Shown here: one piece after another, positions 1 through 29,000 of the stretch
Numbering within the stretch: the stretch's first letter is position 1
Layout of the letters: each line of letters begins with the position of its first letter
From: Auanema rhodensis
Lineage: Eukaryota > Animalia > Nematoda
Reading direction: 5' to 3'
DNA: 60,137 bases
Assembly: GCA_964057225.1 (NCBI GenBank)
Contig: CAXKVF010000103.1
Span: 1-60,137 of the forward strand
The notes under the pieces: generated by a model
Told to the model about the DNA's origin: nothing
Databases searched by the model: none
Seen by the model: only the letters and a program-made list of their open reading frames with translations
Translations under genes and position numbers: made by a program

Positions 1-3000
1 TCATGGTAACCATGACTTTGAAATTTACGTGAACTTTAATTTATGCTAATTAAATGTACACGTGATGTGCACTTGGTATGTAACTCGCTTCACGTGAAAG
101 ATAAAGAGATGCGGTTTTCAAAATTAGATTCCCCATGTCCATATTAGTCTAAAAACAAATTTTTTATTGATATTGGTTTATGGTAACCATGACTTTGAAA
201 TTTACGTGAACTTTAATTTATGCTAATTAAATGTACACGTGGATGTGCACTTGGTATGTAACTCGCTTCACGTGAAAGATAAAGAGATGCGGTTTTCAAA
301 ATTAGATTCCCCATGTCCATATTAGTCTAAAAACAAATTTTTATTGATATTGGTGCATGGTAACCATGACTTTGAAATTTACGTGAACTTTAATTTATGC
401 TAATTAAATGTACACGTGATGTGCACTTGGTATGTAACTCGCTTCACGTGAAAGATAAAGAGATGCGGTTTTCAAAATTAGATTCCCCATGTCCATATTA
501 GTCTAAAAACAAATTTTTATTGATATTGGTGCATGGTAACCATGACTTTGAAATTTACGTGAACTTTAATTTATGCTAATTAAATGTACACGTGATGTGC
601 ACTTGGTATGTAACTCGCTTCACGTGAAAAGATAAAGAGATGCGGGTTTTCAAAATTAGATTCCCCATGTCCATATTAGTCTAAAAACAAATTTTTATTG
701 ATATTGGTGCATGGTAACCATGACTTTGAAATTTACGTGAACTTTAATTTATGCTAATTAAATGTACACGTGATGTGCACTTGGTATGTAACTCGCTTCA
801 CGTGAAAGATAAAGAGATGCGGTTTTCAAAATTAGATTCCCCATGTCCATATTAGTCTAAAAACAAATTTTTATTGATATTGGTGCATGGTAACCATGAC
901 TTTGAAATTTACGTGAACTTTAATTTATGCTAATTAAATGTACACGTGATGTGCACTTGGTATGTAACTCGCTTCACGTGAAAGATAAAGAGATGCGGTT
1001 TTCAAAATTAGATTCCCCATGTCCATATTAGTCTAAAAACAAATTTTTATTGATATTGGTGAATGGTAACCATGACTTTGAAATTTACGTGAACTTTAAT
1101 TTATGCTAATTAAATGTACACGTGATGTGCACTTGGTATGTAACTCGCTTCACGTGAAAGATAAAGAGATGCGGTTTTCAAAATTAGATTCCCCATGTCC
1201 ATATTAGTCTAAAAACAAATTTTTATTGATATTGGTGCATGGTAACCATGACTTTGAAATTTACGTGAACTTTAATTTATGCTAATTAAATGTACACGTG
1301 ATGTGCACTTGGTATGTAACTCGCTTCACGTGAAAGATAAAGAGATGCGGTTTTCAAAATTAGATTCCCCATGTCCATATTAGTCTAAAAACAAATTTTT
1401 ATTGATATTGGTGCATGGTAACCATGACTTTGAAATTTACGTGAACTTTAATTTATGCTAATTAAATGTACACGTGATGTGCACTTGGTATGTAACTCGC
1501 TTCACGTGAAAGATAAAGAGATGCGGTTTTCAAAATTAGATTCCCCATGTCCATATTAGTCTAAAAACAAATTTTTATTGATATTGGTGCATGGTAACCA
1601 TGACTTTGAAATTTACGTGAACTTTAATTTATGCTAATTAAATGTACACGTGATGTGCACTTGGTATGTAACTCGCTTCACGTGAAAGATAACGAGATGC
1701 GGTTTTCAAAATTAGATTCCCCATGTCCATATTAGTCTAAAAACAAATTTTTATTGATATTGGTGAATGGTAACCATGACTTTGAAATTTACGTGAACTT
1801 TAATTTATGCTAATTAAATGTACACGTGATGTGCACTTGGTATGTAACTCGCTTCACGTGAAAGATAAAGAGATGCGGTTTTCAAAATTAGATTCCCCAT
1901 GTCCATATTAGTCTAAAAACAAATTTTTATTGATATTGGTTCATGGTAACCATGACTTTGAAATTTACGTGAACTTTAATTTATGCTAATTAAATGTACA
2001 CGTGATGTGCACTTGGTATGTAACTCGCTTCACGTGAAAGATAAAGAGATGCGGTTTTCAAAATTAGATTCTCCATGTCCATATTAGTCTAAAAACAAAT
2101 TTTTATTGATATTGGTTCATGGTAACCATGACTTTGAAATTTACGTGAACTTTAATTTATGCTAATTAAATGTACACGTGATGTGCACTTGGTATGTAAC
2201 TCGCTTCACGTGAAAGATAAAGAGATGCGGTTTTCAAAATTAGATTCCCCATGTCCATATTAGTCTAAAAACAAATTTTTATTGATATTGGTGCATGGTA
2301 ACCATGACTTTGAAATTTACGTGAACTTTAATTTATGCTAATTAAATGTACACGTGATGTGCACTTGGTATGTAACTCGCTTCACGTGAAAGATAAAGAG
2401 ATGCGGTTTTCAAAATTAGATTCCCCATGTCCATATTAGTCTAAAAACAAATTTTTATTGATATTGGTGCATGGTAACCATGACTTTGAAATTTACGTGA
2501 ACTTTAATTTATGCTAATTAAATGTACACGTGATGTGCACTTGGTATGTAACTCGCTTCACGTGAAAGATAACGAGATGCGGTTTTCAAAATTAGATTCC
2601 CCATGTCCATATTAGTCTAAAAACAAATTTTTATTGATATTGGTGCATGGTAACCATGACTTTGAAATTTACGTGAACTTTAATTTATGCTAATTAAATG
2701 TACACGTGATGTGCACTTGGTATGTAACTCGCTTCACGTGAAAGATAAAGAGATGCGGTTTTCAAAATTAGATTCCCCATGTCCATATTAGTCTAAAAAA
2801 CAAATTTTTATTGATATTGGTGCATGGTAACCATGACTTTGAAATTTACGTGAACTTTAATTTATGCTAATTAAATGTACACGTGATGTGCACTTGGTAT
2901 GTAACTCGCTTCACGTGAAAGATAACGAGATGCGGTTTTCAAAATTAGATTCCCCATGTCCATATTAGTCTAAAAACAAATTTTTATTGATATTGGTGCA

Positions 3001-6000
3001 TGGTAACCATGACTTTGAAATTTACGTGAACTTTAATTTATGCTAATTAAATGTACACGTGATGTGCACTTGGTATGTAACTCGCTTCACGTGAAAGATA
3101 AAGAGATGCGGTTTTCAAAATTAGATTCCCCATGTCCATATTAGTCTAAAAACAAATTTTTATTGATATTGGTTCATGGTAACCATGACTTTGAAATTTA
3201 CGTGAACTTTAATTTATGCTAATTAAATGTACACGTGATGTGCACTTGGTATGTAACTCGCTTCACGTGAAAGATAAAGAGATGCGGTTTTCAAAATTAG
3301 ATTCCCCATGTCCATATTAGTCTAAAAACAAATTTTTATTGATATTGGTTCATGGTAACCATGACTTTGAAATTTACGTGAACTTTAATTTATGCTAATT
3401 AAATGTACACGTGATGTGCACTTGGTATGTAACTCGCTTCACGTGAAAGATAAAGAGATGCGGTTTTCAAAATTAGATTCCCCATGTCCATATTAGTCTA
3501 AAAACAAATTTTTATTGATATTGGTGCATGGTAACCATGACTTTGAAATTTACGTGAACTTTAATTTATGCTAATTAAATGTACACGTGATGTGCACTTG
3601 GTATGTAACTCGCTTCACGTGAAAGATAAAGAGATGCGGTTTTCAAATTAGATTCCCCATGTCCATATTAGTCTAAAAACAAATTTTTATTGATATTGGT
3701 TCATGGTAACCATGACTTTGAAATTTACGTGAACTTTAATTTATGCTAATTAAATGTACACGTGATGTGCACTTGGTATGTAACTCGCTTCACGTGAAAG
3801 ATAAAGAGATGCGGTTTTCAAAATTAGATTCCCCATGTCCATATTAGTCTAAAAACAAATTTTTATTGATATTGGTGCATGGTAACCATGACTTTGAAAT
3901 TTACGTGAACTTTAATTTATGCTAATTAAATGTACACGTGATGTGCACTTGGTATGTAACTCGCTTCACGTGAAAGATAAAGAGATGCGGTTTTCAAAAT
4001 TAGATTCCCCATGTCCATATTAGTCTAAAAACAAATTTTTATTGATATTGGTGCATGGTAACCATGACTTTGAAATTTACGTGAACTTTAATTTATGCTA
4101 ATTAAATGTACACGTGATGTGCACTTGGTATGTAACTCGCTTCACGTGAAAGATAAAGAGATGCGGTTTTCAAAATTAGATTCCCCATGTCCATATTAGT
4201 TTAAAAACAAATTTTTATTGATATTGGTGCATGGTAACCATGACTTTGAAATTTACGTGAACTTTAATTTATGCTAATTAAATGTACACGTGATGTGCAC
4301 TTGGTATGTAACTCGCTTCACGTGAAAGATGAAGAGATGCGGTTTTCAAAATTAGATTCCCATGTCCATATTAGTCTAAAAACAAATTTTTTTGATATTG
4401 GTGCATGGTAACCATGACTTTGAAATTTACGTGAACTTTAATTTATGCTAATTAAATGTACACGTGATGTGCACTTGGTATGTAACTCGCTTCACGTGAA
4501 AGATAAAGAGATGCGGTTTTCAAAATTAGATTCCCCATGTCCATATTAGTCTAAAAACAAATTTTTATTGATATTGGTGCATGGTAACCATGACTTTGAA
4601 ATTTACGTGAACTTTAATTTATGCTAATTAAATGTACACGTGATGTGCACTTCGTATGTAACTCGCTTCACGTGAAAGATGAAGAGATGCGGTTTTCAAA
4701 ATTAGATTCCCCATGTCCATATTAGTCTAAAAACAAATTTTTATTGACATTGGTGCATGGTAACCATGACTTTGAAATTTACGTGAACTTTAATTTATGC
4801 TAATTAAATGTACACGTGATGTGCACTTGGTATGTAACTCGCTTCACGTGAAAGATAAAGAGATGCGGTTTTCAAAATTAGATTCCCCATGTCCATATTA
4901 GTCTAAAAACAAATTTTTATTGATATTGGTGCATGGTAACCATGACTTTGAAATTTACGTGAACTTTAATTTATGCTAATTAAATGTACACGTGATGTGC
5001 ACTTGGTATGTAACTCGCTTCACGTGAAAGATAAAGAGATGCGGTTTTCAAAATTAGATTCCCCATGTCCATATTAGTCTAAAAACAAATTTTTATTGAC
5101 ATTGGTGCATGGTAACCATGACTTTGAAATTTACGTGAACTTTAATTTATGCTAATTAAATGTACACGTGATGTGCACTTGGTATGTAACTCGCTTCACG
5201 TGAAAGATAAAGAGATGCGGTTTTCAAAATTAGATTCCCCATGTCCATATTAGTCTAAAAACAAATTTTTATTGATATTGGTGCATGGTAACCATGACTT
5301 TGAAATTTACGTGAACTTTAATTTATGCTAATTAAATGTACACGTGATGTGCACTTGGTATGTAACTCGCTTCACGTGAAAGATAAAGAGATGCGGTTTT
5401 CAAAATTAGATTCCCCATGTCCATATTAGTCTAAAAACAAATTTTTATTGATATTGGTGCATGGTAACCATGACTTTGAAATTTACGTGAACTTTAATTT
5501 ATGCTAATTAAATGTACACGTGATGTGCACTTGGTATGTAACTCGCTTCACGTGAAAGATAAAGAGATGCGGTTTTCAAAATTAGATTCCCCATGTCCAT
5601 ATTAGTCTAAAAACAAATTTTTATTGATATTGGTTCATGGTAACCATGACTTTGAAATTTACGTGAACTTTAATTTATGCTAATTAAATGTACACGTGAT
5701 GTGCACTTGGTATGTAACTCGCTTCACGTGAAAGATAAAGAGATGCGGTTTTCAAAATTAGATTCCCCATGTCCATATTAGTCTAAAAACAAATTTTTAT
5801 TGATATTGGTGCATGGTAACCATGACTTTGAAATTTACGTGAACTTTAATTTATGCTAATTAAATGTACACGTGATGTGCACTTGGTATGTAACTCGCTT
5901 CACGTGAAAGATAAAGAGATGCGGTTTTCAAAATTAGATTCCCCATGTCCATATTAGTCTAAAAACAAATTTTTATTGATATTGGTGCATGGTAACCATG

Positions 6001-9000
6001 ACTTTGAAATTTACGTGAACTTTAATTTATGCTAATTAAATGTACACGTGATGTGCACTTGGTATGTAACTCGCTTCACGTGAAAGATAAAGAGATGCGG
6101 TTTTCAAAATTAGATTCCCCATGTCCATATTAGTTTAAAAACAAATTTTTATTGATATTGGTGCATGGTAACCATGACTTTGAAATTTACGTGAACTTTA
6201 ATTTATGCTAATTAAATGTACACGTGATGTGCACTTGGTATGTAACTCGCTTCACGTGAAAGATGAAGAGATGCGGTTTTCAAAATTAGATTCCCCATGT
6301 CCATATTAGTCTAAAAACAAATTTTTATTGATATTGGTGCATGGTAACCATGACTTTGAAATTTACGTGAACTTTAATTTATGCTAATTAAATGTACACG
6401 TGATGTGCACTTGGTATGTAACTCGCTTCACGTGAAAGATAAAGAGATGCGGTTTTCAAAATTAGATTCCCCATGTCCATATTAGTCTAAAAACAAATTT
6501 TTATTGATATTGGTGCATGGTAACCATGACTTTGAAATTTACGTGAACTTTAATTTATGCTAATTAAATGTACACGTGATGTGCACTTGGTATGTAACTC
6601 GCTTCACGTGAAAGATAACGAGATGCGGTTTTCAAAATTAGATTCCCCATGTCCATATTAGTCTAAAAACAAATTTTTATTGATATTGGTTCATGGTAAC
6701 CATGACTTTGAAATTTACGTGAACTTTAATTTATGCTAATTAAATGTACACGTGATGTGCACTTGGTATGTAACTCGCTTCACGTGAAAGATAAAGAGAT
6801 GCGGTTTTCAACATTAGATTCCCCATGTCCATATTAGTCTAAAAACAAATTTTTATTGATATTGGTGCATGGTAACCATGACTTTGAAATTTACGTGAAC
6901 TTTAATTTATGCTAATTAAATGTACACGTGATGTGCACTTGGTATGTAACTCGCTTCACGTGAAAGATAAAGAGATGCGGTTTTCAAAATTAGATTCCCC
7001 ATGTCCATATTAGTCTAAAAACAAATTTTTATTGATATTGGTTCATGGTAACCATGACTTTGAAATTTACGTGAACTTTAATTTATGCTAATTAAATGTA
7101 CACGTGATGTGCACTTGGTATGTAACTCGCTTCACGTGAAAGATAAAGAGATGCGGTTTTCAAAATTAGATTCCCCATGTCCATATTAGTCTAAAAACAA
7201 ATTTTTATTGATATTGGTTTATGGTAACCATGACTTTGAAATTTACGTGAACTTTAATTTATGCTAATTAAATGTACACGTGATGTGCACTTGGTATGTA
7301 ACTCGCTTCACGTGAAAGATAAAGAGATGCGGTTTTCAAAATTAGATTCCTCATGTCCATATTAGTCTAAAAACAAATTTTTATTGATATTGGTGCATGG
7401 TAACCATGACTTTGAAATTTACGTGAACTTTAATTTATGCTAATTAAATGTACACGTGATGTGCACTTGGTATGTAACTCGCTTCACGTGAAAGATAAAG
7501 AGATGCGGTTTTCAAAATTAGATTCCCCATGTCCATATTAGTCTAAAAACAAATTTTTATTGATATTGGTGCATGGTAACCATGACTTTGAAATTTACGT
7601 GAACTTTAATTTATGCTAATTAAATGTACACGTGATGTGCACTTGGTATGTAACTCGCTTCACGTAAAGATGAAGAGATGCGGTTTTCAAAATTAGATTC
7701 CCCATGTCCATATTAGTCTAAAAACAAATTTTTATTGATATTGGTGCATGGTAACCATGACTTTGAAATTTACGTGAACTTTAATTTATGCTAATTAAAT
7801 GTACACGTGATGTGCACTTGGTATGTAACTCGCTTCACGTGAAAGATAAAGAGATGCGGTTTTCAAAATTAGATTCCCCATGTCCATATTAGTCTAAAAA
7901 CAAATTTTTATTGATATTGGTGCATGGTAACCATGACTTTGAAATTTACGTGAACTTTAATTTATGCTAATTAAATGTACACGTGATGTGCACTTGGTAT
8001 GTAACTCGCTTCACGTGAAAGATAAAGAGATGCGGTTTTCAAAATTAGATTCCCCATGTCCATATTAGTCTAAAAACAAATTTTTATTGATATTGGTGCA
8101 TGGTAACCATGACTTTGAAATTTACGTGAACTTTAATTTATGCTAATTAAATGTACACGTGATGTGCACTTGGTATGTAACTCGCTTCACGTGAAAGATA
8201 ACGAGATGCGGTTTTCAAAATTAGATTCCCCATGTCCATATTAGTCTAAAAACAAATTTTTATTGATATTGGTTCATGGTAACCATGACTTTGAAATTTA
8301 CGTGAACTTTAATTTATGCTAATTAAATGTACACGTGATGTGCACTTGGTATGTAACTCGCTTCACGTGAAAGATAAAGAGATGCGGTTTTCAACATTAG
8401 ATTCCCCATGTCCATATTAGTCTAAAAACAAATTTTTATTGATATTGGTGCATGGTAACCATGACTTTGAAATTTACGTGAACTTTAATTTATGCTAATT
8501 AAATGTACACGTGATGTGCACTTGGTATGTAACTCGCTTCACGTGAAAGATAAAGAGATGCGGTTTTCAAAATTAGATTCCCCATGTCCATATTAGTCTA
8601 AAAACAAATTTTTATTGATATTGGTTCATGGTAACCATGACTTTGAAATTTACGTGAACTTTAATTTATGCTAATTAAATGTACACGTGATGTGCACTTG
8701 GTATGTAACTCGCTTCACGTGAAAGATAAAGAGATGCGGTTTTCAAAATTAGATTCCCCATGTCCATATTAGTCTAAAAACAAATTTTTATTGATATTGG
8801 TTTATGGTAACCATGACTTTGAAATTTACGTGAACTTTAATTTATGCTAATTAAATGTACACGTGATGTGCACTTGGTATGTAACTCGCTTCACGTGAAA
8901 GATAAAGAGATGCGGTTTTCAAAATTAGATTCCTCATGTCCATATTAGTCTAAAAACAAATTTTTATTGATATTGGTGCATGGTAACCATGACTTTGAAA

Positions 9001-12000
9001 TTTACGTGAACTTTAATTTATGCTAATTAAATGTACACGTGATGTGCACTTGGTATGTAACTCGCTTCACGTGAAAGATAAAGAGATGCGGTTTTCAAAA
9101 TTAGATTCCCCATGTCCATATTAGTCTAAAAACAAATTTTTATTGATATTGGTGCATGGTAACCATGACTTTGAAATTTACGTGAACTTTAATTTATGCT
9201 AATTAAATGTACACGTGATGTGCACTTGGTATGTAACTCGCTTCACGTAAAAGATGAAGAGATGCGGTTTTCAAAATTAGATTCCCCATGTCCATATTAG
9301 TCTAAAAACAAATTTTTATTGATATTGGTGCATGGTAACCATGACTTTGAAATTTACGTGAACTTTAATTTATGCTAATTAAATGTACACGTGATGTGCA
9401 CTTGGTATGTAACTCGCTTCACGTGAAAGATAAAGAGATGCGGTTTTCAAATTAGATTCCCCATGTCCATATTAGTCTAAAAACAAATTTTTATTGATAT
9501 TGGTGCATGGTAACCATGACTTTGAAATTTACGTGAACTTTAATTTATGCTAATTAAATGTACACGTGATGTGCACTTGGTATGTAACTCGCTTCACGTG
9601 AAAGATAAAGAGATGCGGTTTTCAAAATTAGATTCCCCATGTCCATATTAGTCTAAAAACAAATTTTTATTGATATTGGTGCATGGTAACCATGACTTTG
9701 AAATTTACGTGAACTTTAATTTATGCTAATTAAATGTACACGTGATGTGCACTTGGTATGTAACTCGCTTCACGTAAAAGATGAAGAGATGCGGTTTTCA
9801 AAATTAGACTCCCCATGTCCATATTAGTCTAAAAACAAATTTTTATTGATATTGGTGCATGGTAACCATGACTTTGAAATTTACGTGAACTTTAATTTAT
9901 GCTAATTAAATGTACACGTGATGTGCACTTGGTATGTAACTCGCTTCACGTGAAAGATAAGGAGATGCGGTTTTCAAAATTAGATTCCCCATGTCCATAT
10001 TAGTCTAAAAACAAATTTTTATTGACATTGGTGCATGGTAACCATGACTTTGAAATTTACGTGAACTTTAATTTATGCTAATTAAATGTACACGTGATGT
10101 GCACTTGGTATGTAACTCGCTTCACGTGAAAGATAAAGAGATGCGGTTTTCAAAATTAGATTCCCCATGTCCATATTAGTCTAAAAACAAATTTTTATTG
10201 ATATTGGTGCATGGTAACCATGACTTTGAAATTTACGTGAACTTTAATTTATGCTAATTAAATGTACACGTGATGTGCACTTGGTATGTAACTCGCTTCA
10301 CGTGAAAGATGAAGAGATGCGGTTTTCAAAATTAGATTCCCCATGTCCATATTAGTCTAAAAACAAATTTTTATTGATATTGGTGCATGGTAACCATGAC
10401 TTTGAAATTTACGTGAACTTTAATTTATGCTAATTAAATGTACACGTGATGTGCACTTGGTATGTAACTCGCTTCACGTGAAAGATAAAGAGATGCGGTT
10501 TTCAAAATTAGATTCCCCATGTCCATATTAGTCTAAAAACAAATTCTTATTGATATTGGTGCATGGTAACCATGACTTTGAAATTTACGTGAACTTTAAT
10601 TTATGCTAATTAAATGTACACGTGATGTGCACTTGGTATGTAACTCGCTTCACGTGAAAGATGAAGAGATGCGGTTTTCAAAATTAGATTCCCCATGTCC
10701 ATATTAGTCTAAAAACAAATTTTATTGATATTGGTGCATGGTAACCATGACTTTGAAATTTACGTGAACTTTAATTTATGCTAATTAAATGTACACGTGA
10801 TGTGCACTTGGTATGTAACTCGCTTCACGTGAAAGATGAAGAGATGCGGTTTTCAAAATTAGATTCCCCATGTCCATATTAGTCTAAAAACAAATTTTTA
10901 TTGACATTGGTGCATGGTAACCATGACTTTGAAATTTACGTGAACTTTAATTTATGCTAATTAAATGTACACGTGATGGGCACTTGGTATGTAACTCGCT
11001 TCACGTGAAAGATAAAGAGATGCGGTTTTCAAAATTAGATTCCCCATGTCCATATTAGTCTAAAAACAAATTTTTATTGATATTGGTTCATGGTAACCAT
11101 GACTTTGAAATTTACGTGAACTTTAATTTATGCTAATTAAATGTACACGTGATGTGCACTTGGTATGTAACTCGCTTCACGTGAAAGATAAAGAGATGCG
11201 GTTTTCAAAATTAGATTCCCCATGTCCATATTAGTCTAAAAACAAATTTTTATTGATATTGGTTCATGGTAACCATGACTTTGAAATTTACGTGAACTTT
11301 AATTTATGCTAATTAAATGTACACGTGATGTGCACTTGGTATGTAACTCGCTTCACGTGAAAGATAAAGAGATGCGGTTTTCAAAATTAGATTCCCCATG
11401 TCCATATTAGTCTAAAAACAAATTTTATTGATATTGGTGCATGGTAACCATGACTTTGAAATTTACGTGAACTTTAATTTATGCTAATTAAATGTACACG
11501 TGATGTGCACTTGGTATGTAACTCGCTTCACGTGAAAGATAAAGAGATGCGGTTTTCAAAATTAGATTCCCCATGTCCATATTAGTCTAAAAACAAATTT
11601 TTATTGATATTGGTGCATGGTAACCATGACTTTGAAATTTACGTGAACTTTAATTTATGCTAATTAAATGTACACGTGATGTGCACTTGGTATGTAACTC
11701 GCTTCACGTGAAAGATGAAGAGATGCGGTTTTCAAAATTAGATTCCCCATGTCCATATTAGTCTAAAAACAAATTTTTATTGATATTGGTTCATGGTAAC
11801 CATGACTTTGAAATTTACGTGAACTTTAATTTATGCTAATTAAATGTACACGTGATGTGCACTTGGTATGTAACTCGCTTCACGTGAAAGATAAAGAGAT
11901 GCGGTTTTCAAAATTAGATTCCCCATGTCCATATTAGTCTAAAAACAAATTTTTATTGATATTGGTTTATGGTAACCATGACTTTGAAATTTACGTGAAC

Positions 12001-13238
12001 TTTAATTTATGCTAATTAAATGTACACGTGATGTGCACTTGGTATGTAACTCGCTTCACGTGAAAGATAAAGAGATGCGGTTTTCAAAATTAGATTCCCC
12101 ATGTCCATATTAGTCTAAAAACAAATTTTTATTGATATTGGTGCATGGTAACCATGACTTTGAAATTTACGTGAACTTTAATTTATGCTAATTAAATGTA
12201 CACGTGATGTGCACTTGGTATGTAACTCGCTTCACGTGAAAGATAAAGAGATGCGGTTTTCAAAATTAGATTCCCCATGTCCATATTAGTTTAAAAACAA
12301 ATTTTTATTGATATTGGTGCATGGTAACCATGACTTTGAAATTTACGTGAACTTTAATTTATGCTAATTAAATGTACACGTGATGTGCACTTGGTATGTA
12401 ACTCGCTTCACGTGAAAGATGAAGAGATGCGGTTTTCAAAATTAGATTCCCCATGTCCATATTAGTCTAAAAACAAATTTTTATTGATATTGGTGCATGG
12501 TAACCATGACTTTGAAATTTACGTGAACTTTAATTTATGCTAATTAAATGTACACGTGATGTGCACTTGGTATGTAACTCGCTTCACGTGAAAGATAAAG
12601 AGATGCGGTTTTCAAAATTAGATTCCCCATGTCCATATTAGTCTAAAAACAAATTTTTATTGATATTGGTGCATGGTAACCATGACTTTGAAATTTACGT
12701 GAACTTTAATTTATGCTAATTAAATGTACACGTGATGTGCACTTGGTATGTAACTCGCTTCACGTGAAAGATAACGAGATGCGGTTTTCAAAATTAGATT
12801 CCCCATGTCCTTGAAATTTACGTGAACTTTAATTTATGCTAATTGATTCCCCATGTCTTTGAAATTTACGTGAACTTTAATTTATGCTAATTAAATGTAC
12901 ACGTGATGTGCACTTGGTATGTAACTCGCTTCACGTGAAAGATAAAGAGATGCGGTTTTCAAAATTAGATTCCCCATGTCCATATTAGTCTAAAAACAAA
13001 TTTTTATTGATATTGGTGCATGGTAACCATGACTTTGAAATTTACGTGAACTTTAATTTATGCTAATTAAATGTACACGTGATGTGCACTTGGTATGTAA
13101 CTCGCTTCACGTGAAAGATAAAGAGATGCGGTTTTCAAAATTAGATTCCCCATGTCCATATTAGTTTAAAAACAAATTTTTATTGATATTGGTGCATGGT
13201 AACCATGACTTTGAAATTTACGTGAACTTTAATTTATG
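1..13238 (+). repeat. 176-bp tandem satellite, forward-oriented block (about 75 monomers)
   Basis: Consensus CATGGTAACCATGACTTTGAAATTTACGTGAACTTTAATTTATGCTAATTAAATGTACACGTGATGTGCACTTGGTATGTAACTCGCTTCACGTGAAAGATAAAGAGATGCGGTTTTCAAAATTAGATTCCCCATGTCCATATTAGTCTAAAAACAAATTTTTATTGATATTGGTG (176 nt, 57 G+C). Line register recurs every 2640 bp (15 x 176). Most monomers differ from consensus by 0-3 substitutions. Confidence 0.99.
12797..12892 (+). repeat. Rearranged monomer: 2 x 48-bp tandem unit spanning a 53-bp deletion
   Basis: GATTCCCCATGTC[C/T]TTGAAATTTACGTGAACTTTAATTTATGCTAATT occurs twice (12797-12844 and 12845-12892). Local period is 171 bp (12771 to 12942). Confidence 0.95.
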
Positions 13239-13584
13239 CATAAATTAAAGTTCACGTAAATTTCAAAGTCATGGTTACCATGCACCAATATCAATAAAAA
13301 TTTGTTTTTAAACTAATATGGACATGGGGAATCTAATTTTGAAAACCGCATCTCTTTATCTTTCACGTGAAGCGAGTTACATACCAAGTGCACATCACGT
13401 GTACATTTAATTAGCATAAATTAAAGTTCACGTAAATTTCAAAGTCATGGTTACCATGCACCAATATCAATAAAAATTTGTTTTTAGACTAATATGGACA
13501 TGGGGAATCTAATTTTGAAAACCGCATCTCTTTATCTTTCACGTGAAGCGAGTTACATACCAAGTGCACATCACGTGTACATTT

Positions 13585-13680
13585 AATTAGCATAAATTAA
13601 AGTTCACGTAAATTTCAAAGACATGGGGAATCAATTAGCATAAATTAAAGTTCACGTAAATTTCAAGGACATGGGGAATC
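13585..13680 (-). repeat. Rearranged monomer (48-bp duplication, 53-bp deletion), mirror copy
   Basis: Exact reverse complement of 12797-12892. Confidence 0.95.
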
Positions 13681-16600: not shown

Positions 16601-16899
16601 TCATGGTTACCATGCACCAATATCAATAAAAATTTGTTTTTAGACTAATATGGACATGGGGAGTCTAATTTTGAAAACCGCATCTCTTCATCTTTACGTG
16701 AAGCGAGTTACATACCAAGTGCACATCACGTGTACATTTTAATTAGCATAAATTAAAGTTCACGTAAATTTCAAAGTCATGGTTACCATGCACCAATATC
16801 AATAAAAATTTGTTTTTAGACTAATATGGACATGGGGAATCTAATTTTGAAAACCGCATCTCTTTATCTTTCACGTGAAGCGAGTTACATACCAAGTGC

Positions 16900-19800
16900 A
16901 CATCACGTGTACATTTAATTAGCATAAATTAAAGTTCACGTAAATTTCAAAGTCATGGTTACCATGCACCAATATCAATAAAAATTTGTTTTTAGACTAA
17001 TATGGACATGGGGAATCTAATTTTGAAAACCGCATCTCTTTATCTTTCACGTGAAGCGAGTTACATACCAAGTGCACATCACGTGTACATTAATTAGCAT
17101 AAATTAAAGTTCACGTAAATTTCAAAGTCATGGTTACCATGCACCAATATCAATAAAAATTTTGTTTTTAGACTAATATGGACATGGGGAATCTAATTTT
17201 GAAAACCGCATCTCTTCATCTTTTACGTGAAGCGAGTTACATACCAAGTGCACATCACGTGTACATTTAATTAGCATAAATTAAAGTTCACGTAAATTTC
17301 AAAGTCATGGTTACCATGCACCAATATCAATAAAAATTTGTTTTTAGACTAATATGGACATGGGGAATCTAATTTTGAAAACCGCATCTCTTTATCTTTC
17401 ACGTGAAGCGAGTTACATACCAAGTGCACATCACGTGTACATTTAATTAGCATAAATTAAAGTTCACGTAAATTTCAAAGTCATGGTTACCATGCACCAA
17501 TATCAATAAAAATTTGTTTTTAGACTAATATGGACATGAGGAATCTAATTTTGAAAACCGCATCTCTTTATCTTTCACGTGAAGCGAGTTACATACCAAG
17601 TGCACATCACGTGTACATTTAATTAGCATAAATTAAAGTTCACGTAAATTTCAAAGTCATGGTTACCATAAACCAATATCAATAAAAATTTGTTTTTAGA
17701 CTAATATGGACATGGGGAATCTAATTTTGAAAACCGCATCTCTTTATCTTTCACGTGAAGCGAGTTACATACCAAGTGCACATCACGTGTACATTTAATT
17801 AGCATAAATTAAAGTTCACGTAAATTTCAAAGTCATGGTTACCATGAACCAATATCAATAAAAATTTGTTTTTAGACTAATATGGACATGGGGAATCTAA
17901 TTTTGAAAACCGCATCTCTTTATCTTTCACGTGAAGCGAGTTACATACCAAGTGCACATCACGTGTACATTTAATTAGCATAAATTAAAGTTCACGTAAA
18001 TTTCAAAGTCATGGTTACCATGCACCAATATCAATAAAAATTTGTTTTTAGACTAATATGGACATGGGGAATCTAATGTTGAAAACCGCATCTCTTTATC
18101 TTTCACGTGAAGCGAGTTACATACCAAGTGCACATCACGTGTACATTTAATTAGCATAAATTAAAGTTCACGTAAATTTCAAAGTCATGGTTACCATGAA
18201 CCAATATCAATAAAAATTTGTTTTTAGACTAATATGGACATGGGGAATCTAATTTTGAAAACCGCATCTCGTTATCTTTCACGTGAAGCGAGTTACATAC
18301 CAAGTGCACATCACGTGTACATTTAATTAGCATAAATTAAAGTTCACGTAAATTTCAAAGTCATGGTTACCATGCACCAATATCAATAAAAATTTGTTTT
18401 TAGACTAATATGGACATGGGGAATCTAATTTTGAAAACCGCATCTCTTTATCTTTCACGTGAAGCGAGTTACATACCAAGTGCACATCACGTGTACATTT
18501 AATTAGCATAAATTAAAGTTCACGTAAATTTCAAAGTCATGGTTACCATGCACCAATATCAATAAAAATTTGTTTTTAGACTAATATGGACATGGGGAAT
18601 CTAATTTTGAAAACCGCATCTCTTTATCTTTCACGTGAAGCGAGTTACATACCAAGTGCACATCACGTGTACATTTAATTAGCATAAATTAAAGTTCACG
18701 TAAATTTCAAAGTCATGGTTACCATGCACCAATATCAATAAAAATTTGTTTTTAGACTAATATGGACATGGGGAATCTAATTTTGAAAACCGCATCTCTT
18801 CATCTTTTACGTGAAGCGAGTTACATACCAAGTGCACATCACGTGTACATTTAATTAGCATAAATTAAAGTTCACGTAAATTTCAAAGTCATGGTTACCA
18901 TGCACCAATATCAATAAAAATTTGTTTTTAGACTAATATGGACATGGGGAATCTAATTTTGAAAACCGCATCTCTTTATCTTTCACGTGAAGCGAGTTAC
19001 ATACCAAGTGCACATCACGTGTACATTTAATTAGCATAAATTAAAGTTCACGTAAATTTCAAAGTCATGGTTACCATGCACCAATATCAATAAAAATTTG
19101 TTTTTAGACTAATATGGACATGAGGAATCTAATTTTGAAAACCGCATCTCTTTATCTTTCACGTGAAGCGAGTTACATACCAAGTGCACATCACGTGTAC
19201 ATTTAATTAGCATAAATTAAAGTTCACGTAAATTTCAAAGTCATGGTTACCATAAACCAATATCAATAAAAATTTGTTTTTAGACTAATATGGACATGGG
19301 GAATCTAATTTTGAAAACCGCATCTCTTTATCTTTCACGTGAAGCGAGTTACATACCAAGTGCACATCACGTGTACATTTAATTAGCATAAATTAAAGTT
19401 CACGTAAATTTCAAAGTCATGGTTACCATGAACCAATATCAATAAAAATTTGTTTTTAGACTAATATGGACATGGGGAATCTAATTTTGAAAACCGCATC
19501 TCTTTATCTTTCACGTGAAGCGAGTTACATACCAAGTGCACATCACGTGTACATTTAATTAGCATAAATTAAAGTTCACGTAAATTTCAAAGTCATGGTT
19601 ACCATGCACCAATATCAATAAAAATTTGTTTTTAGACTAATATGGACATGGGGAATCTAATGTTGAAAACCGCATCTCTTTATCTTTCACGTGAAGCGAG
19701 TTACATACCAAGTGCACATCACGTGTACATTTAATTAGCATAAATTAAAGTTCACGTAAATTTCAAAGTCATGGTTACCATGAACCAATATCAATAAAAA

Positions 19801-20070
19801 TTTGTTTTTAGACTAATATGGACATGGGGAATCTAATTTTGAAAACCGCATCTCGTTATCTTTCACGTGAAGCGAGTTACATACCAAGTGCACATCACGT
19901 GTACATTTAATTAGCATAAATTAAAGTTCACGTAAATTTCAAAGTCATGGTTACCATGCACCAATATCAATAAAAATTTGTTTTTAGACTAATATGGACA
20001 TGGGGAATCTAATTTTGAAAACCGCATCTCTTTATCTTTCACGTGAAGCGAGTTACATACCAAGTGCACA
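16900..20070 (-). repeat. Tandem duplication of a 9-monomer (1584-bp) unit
   Basis: Markers recur at +1584: 17224/18808, 17539/19123, 17670/19254, 18078/19662, 18271/19855. Mirrored at about 6400-9580. Boundaries are approximate. Confidence 0.88.
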
Positions 20071-23000
20071 TCACGTGTACATTTAATTAGCATAAATTAA
20101 AGTTCACGTAAATTTCAAAGTCATGGTTACCATGCACCAATATCAATAAAAATTTGTTTTTAGACTAATATGGACATGGGGAATCTAATTTTGAAAACCG
20201 CATCTCTTCATCTTTCACGTGAAGCGAGTTACATACCAAGTGCACATCACGTGTACATTTAATTAGCATAAATTAAAGTTCACGTAAATTTCAAAGTCAT
20301 GGTTACCATGCACCAATATCAATAAAAATTTGTTTTTAAACTAATATGGACATGGGGAATCTAATTTTGAAAACCGCATCTCTTTATCTTTCACGTGAAG
20401 CGAGTTACATACCAAGTGCACATCACGTGTACATTTAATTAGCATAAATTAAAGTTCACGTAAATTTCAAAGTCATGGTTACCATGCACCAATATCAATA
20501 AAAATTTGTTTTTAGACTAATATGGACATGGGGAATCTAATTTTGAAAACCGCATCTCTTTATCTTTCACGTGAAGCGAGTTACATACCAAGTGCACATC
20601 ACGTGTACATTTAATTAGCATAAATTAAAGTTCACGTAAATTTCAAAGTCATGGTTACCATGCACCAATATCAATAAAAATTTGTTTTTAGACTAATATG
20701 GACATGGGGAATCTAATTTTGAAAACCGCATCTCTTTATCTTTCACGTGAAGCGAGTTACATACCAAGTGCACATCACGTGTACATTTAATTAGCATAAA
20801 TTAAAGTTCACGTAAATTTCAAAGTCATGGTTACCATGAACCAATATCAATAAAAATTTGTTTTTAGACTAATATGGACATGGGGAATCTAATTTTGAAA
20901 ACCGCATCTCTTTATCTTTCACGTGAAGCGAGTTACATACCAAGTGCACATCACGTGTACATTTAATTAGCATAAATTAAAGTTCACGTAAATTTCAAAG
21001 TCATGGTTACCATGCACCAATATCAATAAAAATTTGTTTTTAGACTAATATGGACATGGGGAATCTAATTTTGAAAACCGCATCTCTTTATCTTTCACGT
21101 GAAGCGAGTTACATACCAAGTGCACATCACGTGTACATTTAATTAGCATAAATTAAAGTTCACGTAAATTTCAAAGTCATGGTTACCATGCACCAATATC
21201 AATAAAAATTTGTTTTTAGACTAATATGGACATGGGGAATCTAATTTTGAAAACCGCATCTCTTTATCTTTCACGTGAAGCGAGTTACATACCAAGTGCA
21301 CATCACGTGTACATTTAATTAGCATAAATTAAAGTTCACGTAAATTTCAAAGTCATGGTTACCATGCACCAATGTCAATAAAAATTTGTTTTTAGACTAA
21401 TATGGACATGGGGAATCTAATTTTGAAAACCGCATCTCTTTATCTTTCACGTGAAGCGAGTTACATACCAAGTGCACATCACGTGTACATTTAATTAGCA
21501 TAAATTAAAGTTCACGTAAATTTCAAAGTCATGGTTACCATGCACCAATATCAATAAAAATTTGTTTTTAGACTAATATGGACATGGGGAATCTAATTTT
21601 GAAAACCGCATCTCTTTATCTTTCACGTGAAGCGAGTTACATACCAAGTGCACATCACGTGTACATTTAATTAGCATAAATTAAAGTTCACGTAAATTTC
21701 AAAGTCATGGTTACCATGCACCAATGTCAATAAAAATTTGTTTTTAGACTAATATGGACATGGGGAATCTAATTTTGAAAACCGCATCTCTTCATCTTTC
21801 ACGTGAAGCGAGTTACATACGAAGTGCACATCACGTGTACATTTAATTAGCATAAATTAAAGTTCACGTAAATTTCAAAGTCATGGTTACCATGCACCAA
21901 TATCAATAAAAATTTGTTTTTAGACTAATATGGACATGGGGAATCTAATTTTGAAAACCGCATCTCTTTATCTTTCACGTGAAGCGAGTTACATACCAAG
22001 TGCACATCACGTGTACATTTAATTAGCATAAATTAAAGTTCACGTAAATTTCAAAGTCATGGTTACCATGCACCAATATCAAAAAAATTTGTTTTTAGAC
22101 TAATATGGACATGGGGAATCTAATTTTGAAAACCGCATCTCTTCATCTTTCACGTGAAGCGAGTTACATACCAAGTGCACATCACGTGTACATTTAATTA
22201 GCATAAATTAAAGTTCACGTAAATTTCAAAGTCATGGTTACCATGCACCAATATCAATAAAAATTTGTTTTTAAACTAATATGGACATGGGGAATCTAAT
22301 TTTGAAAACCGCATCTCTTTATCTTTCACGTGAAGCGAGTTACATACCAAGTGCACATCACGTGTACATTTAATTAGCATAAATTAAAGTTCACGTAAAT
22401 TTCAAAGTCATGGTTACCATGCACCAATATCAATAAAAATTTGTTTTTAGACTAATATGGACATGGGGAATCTAATTTTGAAAACCGCATCTCTTTATCT
22501 TTCACGTGAAGCGAGTTACATACCAAGTGCACATCACGTGTACATTTAATTAGCATAAATTAAAGTTCACGTAAATTTCAAAGTCATGGTTACCATGCAC
22601 CAATATCAATAAAAATTTGTTTTTAGACTAATATGGACATGGGGAATCTAATTTTGAAAACCGCATCTCTTTATCTTTCACGTGAAGCGAGTTACATACC
22701 AAGTGCACATCACGTGTACATTTAATTAGCATAAATTAAAGTTCACGTAAATTTCAAAGTCATGGTTACCATGAACCAATATCAATAAAAATTTGTTTTT
22801 AGACTAATATGGACATGGGGAATCTAATTTTGAAAACCGCATCTCTTTATCTTTCACGTGAAGCGAGTTACATACCAAGTGCACATCACGTGTACATTTA
22901 ATTAGCATAAATTAAAGTTCACGTAAATTTCAAAGTCATGGTTACCATGCACCAATATCAATAAAAATTTGTTTTTAGACTAATATGGACATGGGGAATC

Positions 23001-26000
23001 TAATTTTGAAAACCGCATCTCTTTATCTTTCACGTGAAGCGAGTTACATACCAAGTGCACATCACGTGTACATTTAATTAGCATAAATTAAAGTTCACGT
23101 AAATTTCAAAGTCATGGTTACCATGAACCAATATCAATAAAAATTTGTTTTTAGACTAATATGGACATGGGGAATCTAATTTTGAAAACCGCATCTCTTT
23201 ATCTTTCACGTGAAGCGAGTTACATACCAAGTGCACATCACGTGTACATTTAATTAGCATAAATTAAAGTTCACGTAAATTTCAAAGTCATGGTTACCAT
23301 GAACCAATATCAATAAAAATTTGTTTTTAGACTAATATGGACATGGGGAATCTAATTTTGAAAACCGCATCTCTTTATCTTTCACGTGAAGCGAGTTACA
23401 TACCAAGTGCACATCACGTGTACATTTAATTAGCATAAATTAAAGTTCACGTAAATTTCAAAGTCATGGTTACCATGCACCAATATCAATAAAAATTTGT
23501 TTTTAGACTAATATGGACATGGGGAATCTAATTTTGAAAACCGCATCTCGTTATCTTTCACGTGAAGCGAGTTACATACCAAGTGCACATCACGTGTACA
23601 TTTAATTAGCATAAATTAAAGTTCACGTAAATTTCAAAGTCATGGTTACCATGCACCAATATCAATAAAAATTTGTTTTTAGACTAATATGGACATGGGG
23701 AATCTAATTTTGAAAACCGCATCTCTTTATCTTTCACGTGAAGCGAGTTACATACCAAGTGCACATCACGTGTACATTTAATTAGCATAAATTAAAGTTC
23801 ACGTAAATTTCAAAGTCATGGTTACCATGCACCAATATCAATAAAAATTTGTTTTTAGACTAATATGGACATGGGGAATCTAATTTTGAAAACCGCATCT
23901 CGTTATCTTTCACGTGAAGCGAGTTACATACCAAGTGCACATCACGTGTACATTTAATTAGCATAAATTAAAGTTCACGTAAATTTCAAAGTCATGGTTA
24001 CCATGCACCAATATCAATAAAAATTTGTTTTTAGACTAATATGGACATGGGGAATCTAATTTTGAAAACCGCATCTCTTTATCTTTCACGTGAAGCGAGT
24101 TACATACCAAGTGCACATCACGTGTACATTTAATTAGCATAAATTAAAGTTCACGTAAATTTCAAAGTCATGGTTACCATGCACCAATATCAATAAAAAT
24201 TTGTTTTTAGACTAATATGGACATGGGGAATCTAATTTTGAAAACCGCATCTCTTTATCTTTCACGTGAAGCGAGTTACATACCAAGTGCACATCACGTG
24301 TACATTTAATTAGCATAAATTAAAGTTCACGTAAATTTCAAAGTCATGGTTACCATGAACCAATATCAATAAAAATTTGTTTTTAGACTAATATGGACAT
24401 GGAGAATCTAATTTTGAAAACCGCATCTCTTTATCTTTCACGTGAAGCGAGTTACATACCAAGTGCACATCACGTGTACATTTAATTAGCATAAATTAAA
24501 GTTCACGTAAATTTCAAAGTCATGGTTACCATGAACCAATATCAATAAAAATTTGTTTTTAGACTAATATGGACATGGGGAATCTAATTTTGAAAACGGC
24601 ATCTCTTTATCTTTCACGTGAAGCGAGTTACATACCAAGTGCACATCACGTGTACATTTAATTAGCATAAATTAAAGTTCACGTAAATTTCAAAGTCATG
24701 GTTACCATTCACCAATATCAATAAAAATTTGTTTTTAGACTAATATGGACATGGGGAATCTAATTTTGAAAACCGCATCTCGTTATCTTTCACGTGAAGC
24801 GAGTTACATACCAAGTGCACATCACGTGTACATTTAATTAGCATAAATTAAAGTTCACGTAAATTTCAAAGTCATGGTTACCATGCACCAATATCAATAA
24901 AAATTTGTTTTTAGACTAATATGGACATGGGGAATCTAATTTTGAAAACCGCATCTCTTTATCTTTCACGTGAAGCGAGTTACATACCAAGTGCACATCA
25001 CGTGTACATTTAATTAGCATAAATTAAAGTTCACGTAAATTTCAAAGTCATGGTTACCATGCACCAATATCAATAAAAATTTGTTTTTAGACTAATATGG
25101 ACATGGGGAATCTAATTTTGAAAACCGCATCTCTTTATCTTTCACGTGAAGCGAGTTACATACCAAGTGCACATCACGTGTACATTTAATTAGCATAAAT
25201 TAAAGTTCACGTAAATTTCAAAGTCATGGTTACCATGCACCAATGTCAATAAAAATTTGTTTTTAGACTAATATGGACATGGGGAATCTAATTTTGAAAA
25301 CCGCATCTCTTCATCTTTCACGTGAAGCGAGTTACATACCAAGTGCACATCACGTGTACATTTAATTAGCATAAATTAAAGTTCACGTAAATTTCAAAGT
25401 CATGGTTACCATTCACCAATATCAATAAAAATTTGTTTTTAGACTAATATGGACATGGGGAATCTAATTTTGAAAACCGCATCTCGTTATCTTTCACGTG
25501 AAGCGAGTTACATACCAAGTGCACATCACGTGTACATTTAATTAGCATAAATTAAAGTTCACGTAAATTTCAAAGTCATGGTTACCATGCACCAATATCA
25601 ATAAAAATTTGTTTTTAGACTAATATGGACATGGGGAATCTAATTTTGAAAACCGCATCTCTTTATCTTTCACGTGAAGCGAGTTACATACCAAGTGCAC
25701 ATCACGTGTACATTTAATTAGCATAAATTAAAGTTCACGTAAATTTCAAAGTCATGGTTACCATGCACCAATATCAATAAAAATTTGTTTTTAGACTAAT
25801 ATGGACATGGGGAATCTAATTTTGAAAACCGCATCTCTTCATCTTTTACGTGAAGCGAGTTACATACCAAGTGCACATCACGTGTACATTTAATTAGCAT
25901 AAATTAAAGTTCACGTAAATTTCAAAGTCATGGTTACCATGCACCAATATCAATAAAAATTTGTTTTTAGACTAATATGGACATGGGGAATCTAATTTTG

Positions 26001-29000
26001 AAAACCGCATCTCTTTATCTTTCACGTGAAGCGAGTTACATACCAAGTGCACATCACGTGTACATTTAATTAGCATAAATTAAAGTTCACGTAAATTTCA
26101 AAGTCATGGTTACCATGCACCAATATCAATAAAAATTTGTTTTTAGACTAATATGGACATGGGGAATCTAATTTTGAAAACCGCATCTCTTTATCTTTCA
26201 CGTGAAGCGAGTTACATACCAAGTGCACATCACGTGTACATTTAATTAGCATAAATTAAAGTTCACGTAAATTTCAAAGTCATGGTTACCATAAACCAAT
26301 ATCAATAAAAATTTGTTTTTAGACTAATATGGACATGGGGAATCTAATTTTGAAAACCGCATCTCTTTATCTTTCACGTGAAGCGAGTTACATACCAAGT
26401 GCACATCACGTGTACATTTAATTAGCATAAATTAAAGTTCACGTAAATTTCAAAGTCATGGTTACCATGAACCAATATCAATAAAAATTTGTTTTTAGAC
26501 TAATATGGACATGGGGAATCTAATTTTGAAAACCGCATCTCTTTATCTTTCACGTGAAGCGAGTTACATACCAAGTGCACATCACGTGTACATTTAATTA
26601 GCATAAATTAAAGTTCACGTAAATTTCAAAGTCATGGTTACCATGCACCAATATCAATAAAAATTTGTTTTTAGACTAATATGGACATGGGGAATCTAAT
26701 GTTGAAAACCGCATCTCTTCATCTTTCACGTGAAGCGAGTTACATACCAAGTGCACATCACGTGTACATTTAATTAGCATAAATTAAAGTTCACGTAAAT
26801 TTCAAAGTCATGGTTACCATGAACCAATATCAATAAAAATTTGTTTTTAGACTAATATGGACATGGGGAATCTAATTTTGAAAACCGCATCTCGTTATCT
26901 TTCACGTGAAGCGAGTTACATACCAAGTGCACATCACGTGTACATTTAATTAGCATAAATTAAAGTTCACGTAAATTTCAAAGTCATGGTTACCATGCAC
27001 CAATATCAATAAAAATTTGTTTTTAGACTAATATGGACATGGGGAATCTAATTTTGAAAACCGCATCTCTTTATCTTTCACGTGAAGCGAGTTACATACC
27101 AAGTGCACATCACGTGTACATTTAATTAGCATAAATTAAAGTTCACGTAAATTTCAAAGTCATGGTTACCATGCACCAATATCAATAAAAATTTGTTTTT
27201 AGACTAATATGGACATGGGGAATCTAATTTTGAAAACCGCATCTCTTCATCTTTCACGTGAAGCGAGTTACATACCAAGTGCACATCACGTGTACATTTA
27301 ATTAGCATAAATTAAAGTTCACGTAAATTTCAAAGTCATGGTTACCATGCACCAATATCAATAAAAATTTGTTTTTAAACTAATATGGACATGGGGAATC
27401 TAATTTTGAAAACCGCATCTCTTTATCTTTCACGTGAAGCGAGTTACATACCAAGTGCACATCACGTGTACATTTAATTAGCATAAATTAAAGTTCACGT
27501 AAATTTCAAAGTCATGGTTACCATGCACCAATATCAATAAAAATTTGTTTTTAGACTAATATGGACATGGGGAATCTAATTTTGAAAACCGCATCTCTTT
27601 ATCTTTCACGTGAAGCGAGTTACATACCAAGTGCACATCACGTGTACATTTAATTAGCATAAATTAAAGTTCACGTAAATTTCAAAGTCATGGTTACCAT
27701 GCACCAATGTCAATAAAAATTTGTTTTTAGACTAATATGGACATGGGGAATCTAATTTTGAAAACCGCATCTCTTCATCTTTCACGTGAAGCGAGTTACA
27801 TACCAAGTGCACATCACGTGTACATTTAATTAGCATAAATTAAAGTTCACGTAAATTTCAAAGTCATGGTTACCATGCACCAATATCAATAAAAATTTGT
27901 TTTTAGACTAATATGGACATGGGGAATCTAATTTTGAAAACCGCATCTCTTCATCTTTTACGTGAAGCGAGTTACATACCAAGTGCACATCACGTGTACA
28001 TTTAATTAGCATAAATTAAAGTTCACGTAAATTTCAAAGTCATGGTTACCATGCACCAATGTCAATAAAAATTTGTTTTTAGACTAATATGGACATGGGG
28101 AATCTAATTTTGAAAACCGCATCTCTTTATCTTTCACGTGAAGCGAGTTACATACCAAGTGCACATCACGTGTACATTTAATTAGCATAAATTAAAGTTC
28201 ACGTAAATTTCAAAGTCATGGTTACCATAAACCAATATCAATAAAAATTTGTTTTTAGACTAATATGGACATGGGGAATCTAATTTTGAAAACCGCATCT
28301 CTTTATCTTTCACGTGAAGCGAGTTACATACCAAGTGCACATCACGTGTACATTTAATTAGCATAAATTAAAGTTCACGTAAATTTCAAAGTCATGGTTA
28401 CCATGAACCAATATCAATAAAAATTTGTTTTTAGACTAATATGGACATGGGGAATCTAATTTTGAAAACCGCATCTCTTCATCTTTCACGTGAAGCGAGT
28501 TACATACCAAGTGCACATCACGTGTACATTTAATTAGCATAAATTAAAGTTCACGTAAATTTCAAAGTCATGGTTACCATGCACCAATATCAATAAAAAT
28601 TTGTTTTTAGACTAATATGGACATGGGGAATCTAATTTTGAAAACCGCATCTCTTTATCTTTCACGTGAAGCGAGTTACATACCAAGTGCACATCACGTG
28701 TACATTTAATTAGCATAAATTAAAGTTCACGTAAATTTCAAAGTCATGGTTACCATGCACCAATGTCAATAAAAATTTGTTTTTAGACTAATATGGACAT
28801 GGGGAATCTAATTTTGAAAACCGCATCTCTTCATCTTTCACGTGAAGCGAGTTACATACCAAGTGCACATCACGTGTACATTTAATTAGCATAAATTAAA
28901 GTTCACGTAAATTTCAAAGTCATGGTTACCATGCACCAATATCAATAAAAATTTGTTTTTAGACTAATATGGACATGGGGAATCTAATTTTGAAAACCGC

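Follow-up and report, generated by a model that had tools for sequence, protein, structure and literature searches.

Contig C110 of the Auanema rhodensis germline assembly begins with a long stretch of satellite DNA that is immediately followed by its own mirror image, and the question raised by this locus is whether the mirrored tip is a fixed part of the genome or the record of one folded-back molecule at the tip of a contig. We lean toward the second answer, with somewhat better than even confidence. The window analyzed here is the whole contig (60,137 bp), which is unplaced, is among the smallest of the 112 contigs, and consists of a 176-bp satellite throughout, with nothing else in the window. 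The assembly was made with hifiasm from PacBio HiFi reads of DNA sheared to ~15 kb, and the source of the DNA was whole worms (10.64898/2026.08.27.747507). TRF reported one 176-bp array on either side of 13238/13239, in opposite orientations, and both the GC and the AT skew flip at this strand switch. The palindrome has the following parts:

Positions 1 to 13238, minus strand: left arm, an inverted copy of 13239-26470 that runs to the contig end.
Positions 13239 to 26470, plus strand: right arm, which continues into the remaining array without a change of orientation.
Positions 13228 to 13249: junction 22-mer, with an exactly symmetric centre (ATG/CAT) and no spacer.

Over 500 nt at the junction the complementarity of the arms is 100%, with 0 nt between them, in agreement with the zero-spacer orientation switch described in the initial annotation. 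Possible microhomology amounts to at most 2 bp (GC), and no adapter remnant or extra bases are present at the junction. The junction 22-mer has a single occurrence in the 181-Mb assembly. ATGCAT, an NsiI site that had been described as absent from the monomer, is indeed missing from the consensus monomer, and its only occurrence in the window is at the junction. Since the window is the entire contig, base 1 is the contig end, a point that the initial annotation had proposed to check, and nothing non-mirrored lies beyond the left arm.

We then consider how closely the two arms resemble each other and the other copies of the satellite. A gapped alignment of the reverse complement of 1-13238 with 13239-26470 reached base 1 and contained only 29 differences (24 one-base indels and 5 substitutions), which bears out the claim that the left arm mirrors the adjacent right arm over its full length. 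The 11.3 kb adjoining the centre contain no substitutions; all five are near base 1, where they are interleaved with mirrored rare variants. The features relevant to this comparison are:

Positions 634 to 1877: five substitution sites; the consensus majority base is found in the left arm, and the right arm retains a minority variant.
Positions 36281 to 49519, plus strand: direct paralog of the right arm at a period of ~23,042 bp, representing the undisturbed, non-inverted state.
Positions 22071 to 22100, plus strand, and 4374 to 4403, minus strand: A-run variant (a 175-bp monomer), mirrored between the arms and missing from the paralog.
Positions 12792 to 12893, minus strand: variant monomer with a 48-bp internal repeat, mirrored at 13584-13685.

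Compared to the paralog at 36281-49519, the left arm has 62 substitutions and the right arm has 70, together with 1 real indel. The left arm has 96 substitutions relative to C82:81724-94963 and 118-130 relative to arbitrary registers. The resemblance between the arms is far beyond chance, and the left arm duplicates the adjacent DNA in inverted form, without true divergence. With 5 substitutions as opposed to 62-70, it is also younger than the 23-kb direct duplication, as had been proposed. The array is highly homogeneous, with in-register segments ~99% identical pairwise, and this could be taken to favor an old inversion between sub-arrays or a chance likeness of homogeneous segments. However, the 5 substitutions to the mirror, compared to 62 for the nearest paralog and ~125 for random registers, together with the clean 11.3 kb beside the centre, refute such an origin, to which we attach a negligible probability; the initial annotation had likewise set the old inversion aside.

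Individual variants were also followed. The A-run variant had been cited as private to the right arm and its mirror; it is mirrored and missing from the paralog, as claimed, but it is not private, since it is found at 22 other sites genome-wide. Besides the A-run, no 31-mers private to the arms were found. A 9-mer duplication cited for the same purpose was not confirmed, as the right arm shows no multi-base indel relative to the paralog and the C110 array contains no monomer of ~185 bp. The variant monomer with the 48-bp repeat also occurs at 36626-36727 and at C82:82078. A 1-kb query for another contig overlapping the right arm past 13239 returned only paralogs of 99% or less. C82 was considered as a parent of C110, but the two are related rather than identical (99.2-99.9%, with whole-monomer shifts), so that C82 does not provide a direct test.

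All 24 indels between the arms are changes in homopolymer length, and in 21 cases the deviant form is absent (0 copies) from the clean portion of the contig (18-60 kb). These indels look like sequencing errors that are independent in each arm. They are distributed as follows:

Positions 1 to 17160: homopolymer read-error zone, straddling the junction.
Positions 1 to 650: error sub-block with 5 events.
Positions 650 to 11427: error sub-block with ~0.65 events per kb.
Positions 13849 to 17160: error sub-block with 13 events (~3.9 per kb).

The 13 events at 13849-17160 were assigned to the right arm by a three-way test with the paralog. The zone from 1 to 17160 makes up 28% of the contig and holds 24 of the 26 indel events (p = 1.5e-11), which corresponds to 1.4 per kb vs. 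0.05 per kb in the other 43 kb. A similar uncorrected patch is found in C82, in ordinary array with no strand switch there. Therefore, we read the zone as raw-read sequence in the layout and not as a property of the palindrome, and since such patches are also found in ordinary array, this one argues only weakly for single-read support.

The tip may instead stem from a fold-back inverted duplication of the 176-bp satellite that is real, arose very recently in the germline and was truncated by the assembly, an explanation that we regard as possible though doubtful. Possible sources of such a duplication are the fusion of sister chromatids, the replication of a break capped by a hairpin, and template switching of a replication fork at the GC dinucleotide. 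Its perfect arms would exceed the reads, so that hifiasm would collapse them and the contig would stop one read past the centre; an isolated 60-kb contig between graph tangles may be just how a collapsed arm is expected to look. A real palindrome is also favored by the many strand switches of the satellite in contigs of chromosome scale, where anchor-pair matches numbered 53 head-to-head and 61 tail-to-tail. We read ±1.5 kb at 15 junctions, all of them head-to-head, and the comparison comprised 12 head-to-head junctions, namely C110 and 11 internal ones. At 4 of the 11 internal junctions, for example C4:4861357 and C83:190971, the arms were identical in the mirror register over 750-1336 nt, again in support of a real palindrome. 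Young fold-back palindromes of natural origin are a frequent feature of the satellite, which makes the real palindrome a stronger rival than the initial annotation allowed; its choice of an artefact as the leading explanation is supported in part, by the homopolymer errors, the contig end and the unique 0-nt junction.

However, C110 has the only exactly symmetric, 0-nt junction among the 12 that were read. The 11 internal junctions have 30-99 nt between the arms at the first register, and in the four young ones the unpaired centre measures 218-405 nt each, so that none of the natural junctions is spacerless. Two guessed cases (C6:21.44 Mb and C88, C5:5.16 Mb) likewise yielded no spacerless symmetric internal junction. 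C110 resembles natural fold-back duplications (attributed to breakage-fusion-bridge cycles, breakage-replication/fusion or fork template switching) in having undiverged, head-to-head arms that derive from adjacent DNA, are closer to each other than to any paralog, and share at most 2 bp of microhomology. The internal satellite junctions, in contrast, have unpaired centres of 30-405 nt and assembled flanks on both sides, whereas the left arm of C110 has no assembled flank, its centre is 0 nt, and its junction 22-mer has no second occurrence in the assembly. A further argument against a real palindrome is the instability of long spacerless palindromes in vivo. Finally, roughly double read depth would be expected near the centre if the palindrome were fixed, yet there are uncorrected errors on both sides of it. 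If real, the C110 palindrome would be the youngest of many fold-back inversions in a satellite that is probably kept only in the germline, and the only spacerless one read so far. It would show the initial product before erosion of the centre; the process is well known and the gain would be modest. Under either reading, the kind of feature is one that is already known.

We prefer a single folded-back molecule because the left arm runs off the contig end and has about the length of one fragment, the 17-kb stretch around the junction contains uncorrected read errors, and this junction is the only spacerless one of the 12. C110 shares with fold-back chimeric reads and false terminal inverted duplications the origin of both halves from the same locus on opposite strands, the meeting of these halves at the same base in exact symmetry, a mirror that continues to base 1 at a contig end with no non-mirrored sequence beyond, and independent errors in each arm. 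In addition, the arm of 13,238 bp does not exceed one library fragment (~15 kb shear), consistent with its earlier description as read-sized. One HiFi read appears to carry both strands of a single ~13.2 kb satellite fragment, joined head to head, and the fold-back of one fragment would give a balanced read of ~26.5 kb. The fold-back may have formed during library handling, or it may have been a rare molecule already in the DNA sample; exactly such a junction would result if a polymerase had switched to the displaced strand at the GC, which is self-complementary. hifiasm would have retained the read as the sole one extending this small, unplaced satellite contig.

Several points weigh against the single folded-back molecule. 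A real perfect palindrome larger than the reads would likewise interrupt the assembly, and the contig would end just past the centre. This case was simulated with a toy string-graph model, not hifiasm itself, in which a true perfect palindrome was walked with reads of 14 ± 3 kb; the path ended 5-10 kb past the centre and 13.2 kb was never attained at 3x, 10x or 29x coverage, so that the overhang of C110 is beyond the reach of genuine ~14 kb reads in this walk. As to the frequency of such molecules, fold-back junctions have been named as one of the leading classes removed by filtering from PacBio libraries (10.64898/2026.06.24.734375), which favors the single molecule. One survey detected almost none among genomic PacBio HiFi reads, compared to ~0.6% for nanopore (PMC12338684), and because of this near absence few would be expected in the satellite. 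The rarity of HiFi fold-back artefacts also favors a real palindrome, and it limits to nanopore the initial annotation's premise that fold-back chimeric reads are common. No relevant report of hifiasm producing false terminal inverted duplications turned up in a literature search.

Another explanation is that the molecule was real but rare: an end of germline-restricted satellite DNA that was either covalently closed as a hairpin or fused to its sister and was represented by 1-2 reads. This we consider improbable. It could stem from eliminated DNA broken during programmed DNA elimination, or from a de novo event in a few of the cultured worms. Reads through a closed hairpin or through an unprocessed sister fusion are exactly symmetric and spacerless, and the signs of low read support would be equal to those of an artefact. 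The satellite is probably restricted to the germline and discarded from somatic cells from the 12-cell stage on, and the sequenced DNA came from whole worms. By sequence, however, a rare molecule of this kind is indistinguishable from a library artefact. Telomere repeats, which are TTAGGC in this nematode host, and elimination motif context are absent from the window, the young-adult DNA probably included few elimination-stage embryos, and we know of no nematode process that makes hairpin ends. It is equally improbable that the tip represents a real hairpin or unprocessed sister fusion in the sense of an elimination intermediate, or of the pristine, spacerless first state behind the asymmetric fold-back junctions of this satellite. 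Sequencing through the covalently closed hairpin telomeres of poxviruses, Borrelia and phage N15 also gives a perfect spacerless palindrome, as in C110, but C110 has no sign of a replicon end and no resolvase context. The idea of a hairpin-capped chromosome end is therefore unsupported, as there are neither telomere repeats nor any sign of a terminal position.

If the mirrored tip is an artefact, as a single folded-back molecule would imply, the first 13.2 kb of C110 are to be trimmed. Similar tips in other HiFi satellite assemblies could then be flagged by the same four signs: a mirror with no spacer, an arm length close to one fragment, a location at the end of a contig, and homopolymer errors that are independent between the arms. 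Fold-back chimeric reads are well documented for nanopore, whereas the platform here is PacBio HiFi, where they are rare. Nanopore fold-back reads usually have ~35 nt of adapter at the join (PMC12338684; 10.64898/2026.06.24.734375). This adapter is absent from the C110 junction, which counts against a fold-back read, and the adapter or low-quality bases typical of nanopore follow-on reads are not seen at the join. Adapter bases at the join are not required of a hairpin-type molecule on PacBio.

The 176-bp satellite fills the whole of C110 (60,137 bp; G+C ~32%), one of the 112 contigs of a 180.9-Mb assembly, and its array changes strand only once, between 13238 and 13239, where both GC and AT skew reverse sign. 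Across 500 nt the arms pair with 100% complementarity, and they abut with 0 nt separating them, which bears out the spacerless palindrome proposed in the initial annotation. The centre is ATG/CAT, and both arms stop at the same monomer base; alternatively, they may overlap by 2 bp at the self-complementary GC. This is the window's sole ATGCAT, a sequence that, as had been claimed, the consensus monomer lacks. Since the window is the complete contig, the left arm terminates at a contig end, and the gapped alignment of the arms does extend to base 1. The copies compared were as follows.

1-13238, minus strand: left arm of the palindrome
13239-26470, plus strand: right arm
36281-49519, plus strand: direct copy of the right arm (paralog)
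C82:81724-94963: third related copy, in another satellite contig

The reverse complement of the left arm differs from the right arm at 29 positions (24 one-base indels and 5 substitutions), and no substitution falls in the 11.3 kb adjoining the centre. The left arm differs by 62 substitutions from the paralog, by 96 from the C82 copy and by 118-130 from arbitrary registers; therefore, it is a copy of the neighbouring sequence. By these counts, the copying postdates the ~0.5% divergence (70 substitutions) of the 23-kb direct duplication, in agreement with the earlier view of an inverted copy younger than that duplication (5 vs. 62-70 substitutions). An old inversion or a chance resemblance is excluded by the substitution counts and by the unsubstituted 11.3 kb beside the centre. 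The direct duplication has a period of ~23,042 bp and 99.4% identity; the C82 copy is 99.2% identical, with a whole-monomer offset relative to C110. Every copy of the block carries a variant monomer with a 48-bp internal repeat, a useful landmark, in which anchor spacing is 48 + 123 rather than 176.

12792-12893: variant monomer, left arm
13584-13685: variant monomer, right arm
36626-36727: variant monomer, paralog
C82:82078: variant monomer, related array

Two other variants had been cited as private to the right arm and mirrored in the left. The A-run is indeed mirrored in the arms and absent from the paralog, but it recurs 22 times elsewhere and so is not unique to C110 but shared or recurrent; 14 of these 22 copies of the 175-bp A-run monomer cluster at C5:21292159-21543148 (21.29-21.54 Mb), with 8 sites besides. 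The 9-mer duplication was not found on inspection of the arms and paralog.

All 24 indels between the arms alter the length of a homopolymer run, and 21 of the deviant forms occur nowhere in the clean array sequence. At each of the 13 right-arm events (13849-17160), the paralog matches the left arm. We take the indels to be read errors that arose independently in each arm rather than divergence. Indel events number 1.4 per kb in 1-17160 vs. 0.05 per kb in the remaining 43 kb, with 24 of 26 confined to 28% of the contig (p = 1.5e-11), and the 13849-17160 block has a higher density (13 events in 3.9 kb) than the left arm (11 in 13.2 kb; p = 0.0009). We infer that the layout includes two or more uncorrected reads: one would run from base 1 past the centre, and a second would start at the centre or just to its right. 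At each of the five substitutions (634-1877), the majority base is in the left arm and a minority variant in the right, and mirrored rare variants interleave with them, including the 26293/26294 pair near base 180; this looks like a read end over-corrected towards consensus rather than an arm boundary.

The control contig C82 has a similar patch at 66.6-74.9 kb (66592-74860; 25 events, nearly all homopolymer) and a second at 113.7-115.9 kb (113753-115860), together 29 events at ~3 per kb in an otherwise clean contig. No strand switch was found in its first 120 kb. Therefore, such patches mark read sequence left uncorrected by hifiasm and are not a property of palindromes; those of C82 probably mark individual low-quality HiFi reads used in the layout, and the joins there may be weak.

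The assembly is very likely the 180.9-Mb Auanema rhodense APS4 germline assembly of a 2026 preprint, built with hifiasm 0.16.1 from PacBio HiFi reads (Sequel IIe) of DNA sheared to ~15 kb, which leaves ~11 Mb of repeat-rich sequence unplaced and has tandem-repeat blocks, at ~29x depth, that are lost from somatic cells (10.64898/2026.08.27.747507). Contigs C1 and C3-C7 carry the 176-bp satellite close to their ends, consistent with the autosome-terminal repeats that the preprint describes as germline-restricted.

We lean, by a modest degree, towards the tip of C110 being a single-molecule fold-back; artefact stays the best explanation, as first suggested, but is not proven. The arm stops at the contig end, its length matches one fragment, and the junction 22-mer has no second copy in the assembly. 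The junction is exactly symmetrical, as required if both duplex strands were read in series. Uncorrected read sequence flanks the centre on both sides, where a fixed palindrome should show doubled depth, although uncorrected patches are present elsewhere too. A toy string graph of a genuine perfect palindrome, walked with reads of 14 +/- 3 kb, never yielded a path extending 13.2 kb beyond the centre (median 5-8 kb), whereas a balanced ~26.5-kb read, the product of a folded 13.2-kb fragment, would reach that far; the toy model, however, differs from hifiasm. Among the classes filtered from PacBio libraries, fold-backs are named as a leading one (10.64898/2026.06.24.734375), but one survey found them virtually absent from HiFi genomic data (PMC12338684). 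A contig would likewise end at a real perfect palindrome that exceeded read length, and a very recent germline palindrome is the less probable but still substantial alternative. A real but rare molecule, hairpin or sister-fused, seems very unlikely.

Also weighing against an artefact, natural fold-back is frequent in this satellite. Anchor-pair patterns gave 53 head-to-head and 61 tail-to-tail matches genome-wide, the majority in chromosome-scale contigs; among the small contigs C100-C112, C110 alone is represented among the closely spaced junctions listed. We read +/-1.5 kb around 15 head-to-head junctions and measured the 11 simple ones, in which first-register arm separation is 30-99 nt and none has a spacerless centre. 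Searches for two further candidate spacerless internal centres found none. A register scan recognised four of the 11 as young palindromes.

C4:4861357 (C4:4859857-4862922): 0 differences in 1336 nt, mirror register; unpaired centre 218 nt
C83:190971 (C83:189471-192641): 0 differences in 1207 nt, mirror register; unpaired centre 405 nt
C5:23049676 (C5:23048176-23051310): 0 differences in the first 895 nt, mirror register; unpaired centre 265 nt
C83:749357 (C83:747857-750946): 0 differences in the first 752 nt, mirror register; unpaired centre 234 nt

After a shift of 1-2 monomers, the arms of the first two are identical over all readable sequence, and both are natural young fold-back palindromes within large contigs. 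In the other two, ~8 substitutions follow in the next 360-590 nt, so the copied arm is just 4-5 monomers long. With identical arms at 4 of 11 junctions, natural, very young fold-back copies are common in the satellite. Neither explanation, artefact or natural process, is of a new kind.

We infer that the C110 junction could form when a polymerase copying one strand changes template without shifting position, moving to the displaced strand or to that of the sister, with the self-complementary GC providing the pairing; such a switch would yield exactly TTTATGC then ATAAA, without a spacer. The same sequence would come from two identical sister ends fused blunt, or from a closed hairpin that was replicated, and an event in the tube would leave the same sequence as one in the worm. 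Elsewhere, some strand switches are repeated as parts of higher-order units at C1:18.17-18.18 Mb, C5:5.16/5.18 Mb, C84:47/53 kb and C99:86-91 kb.
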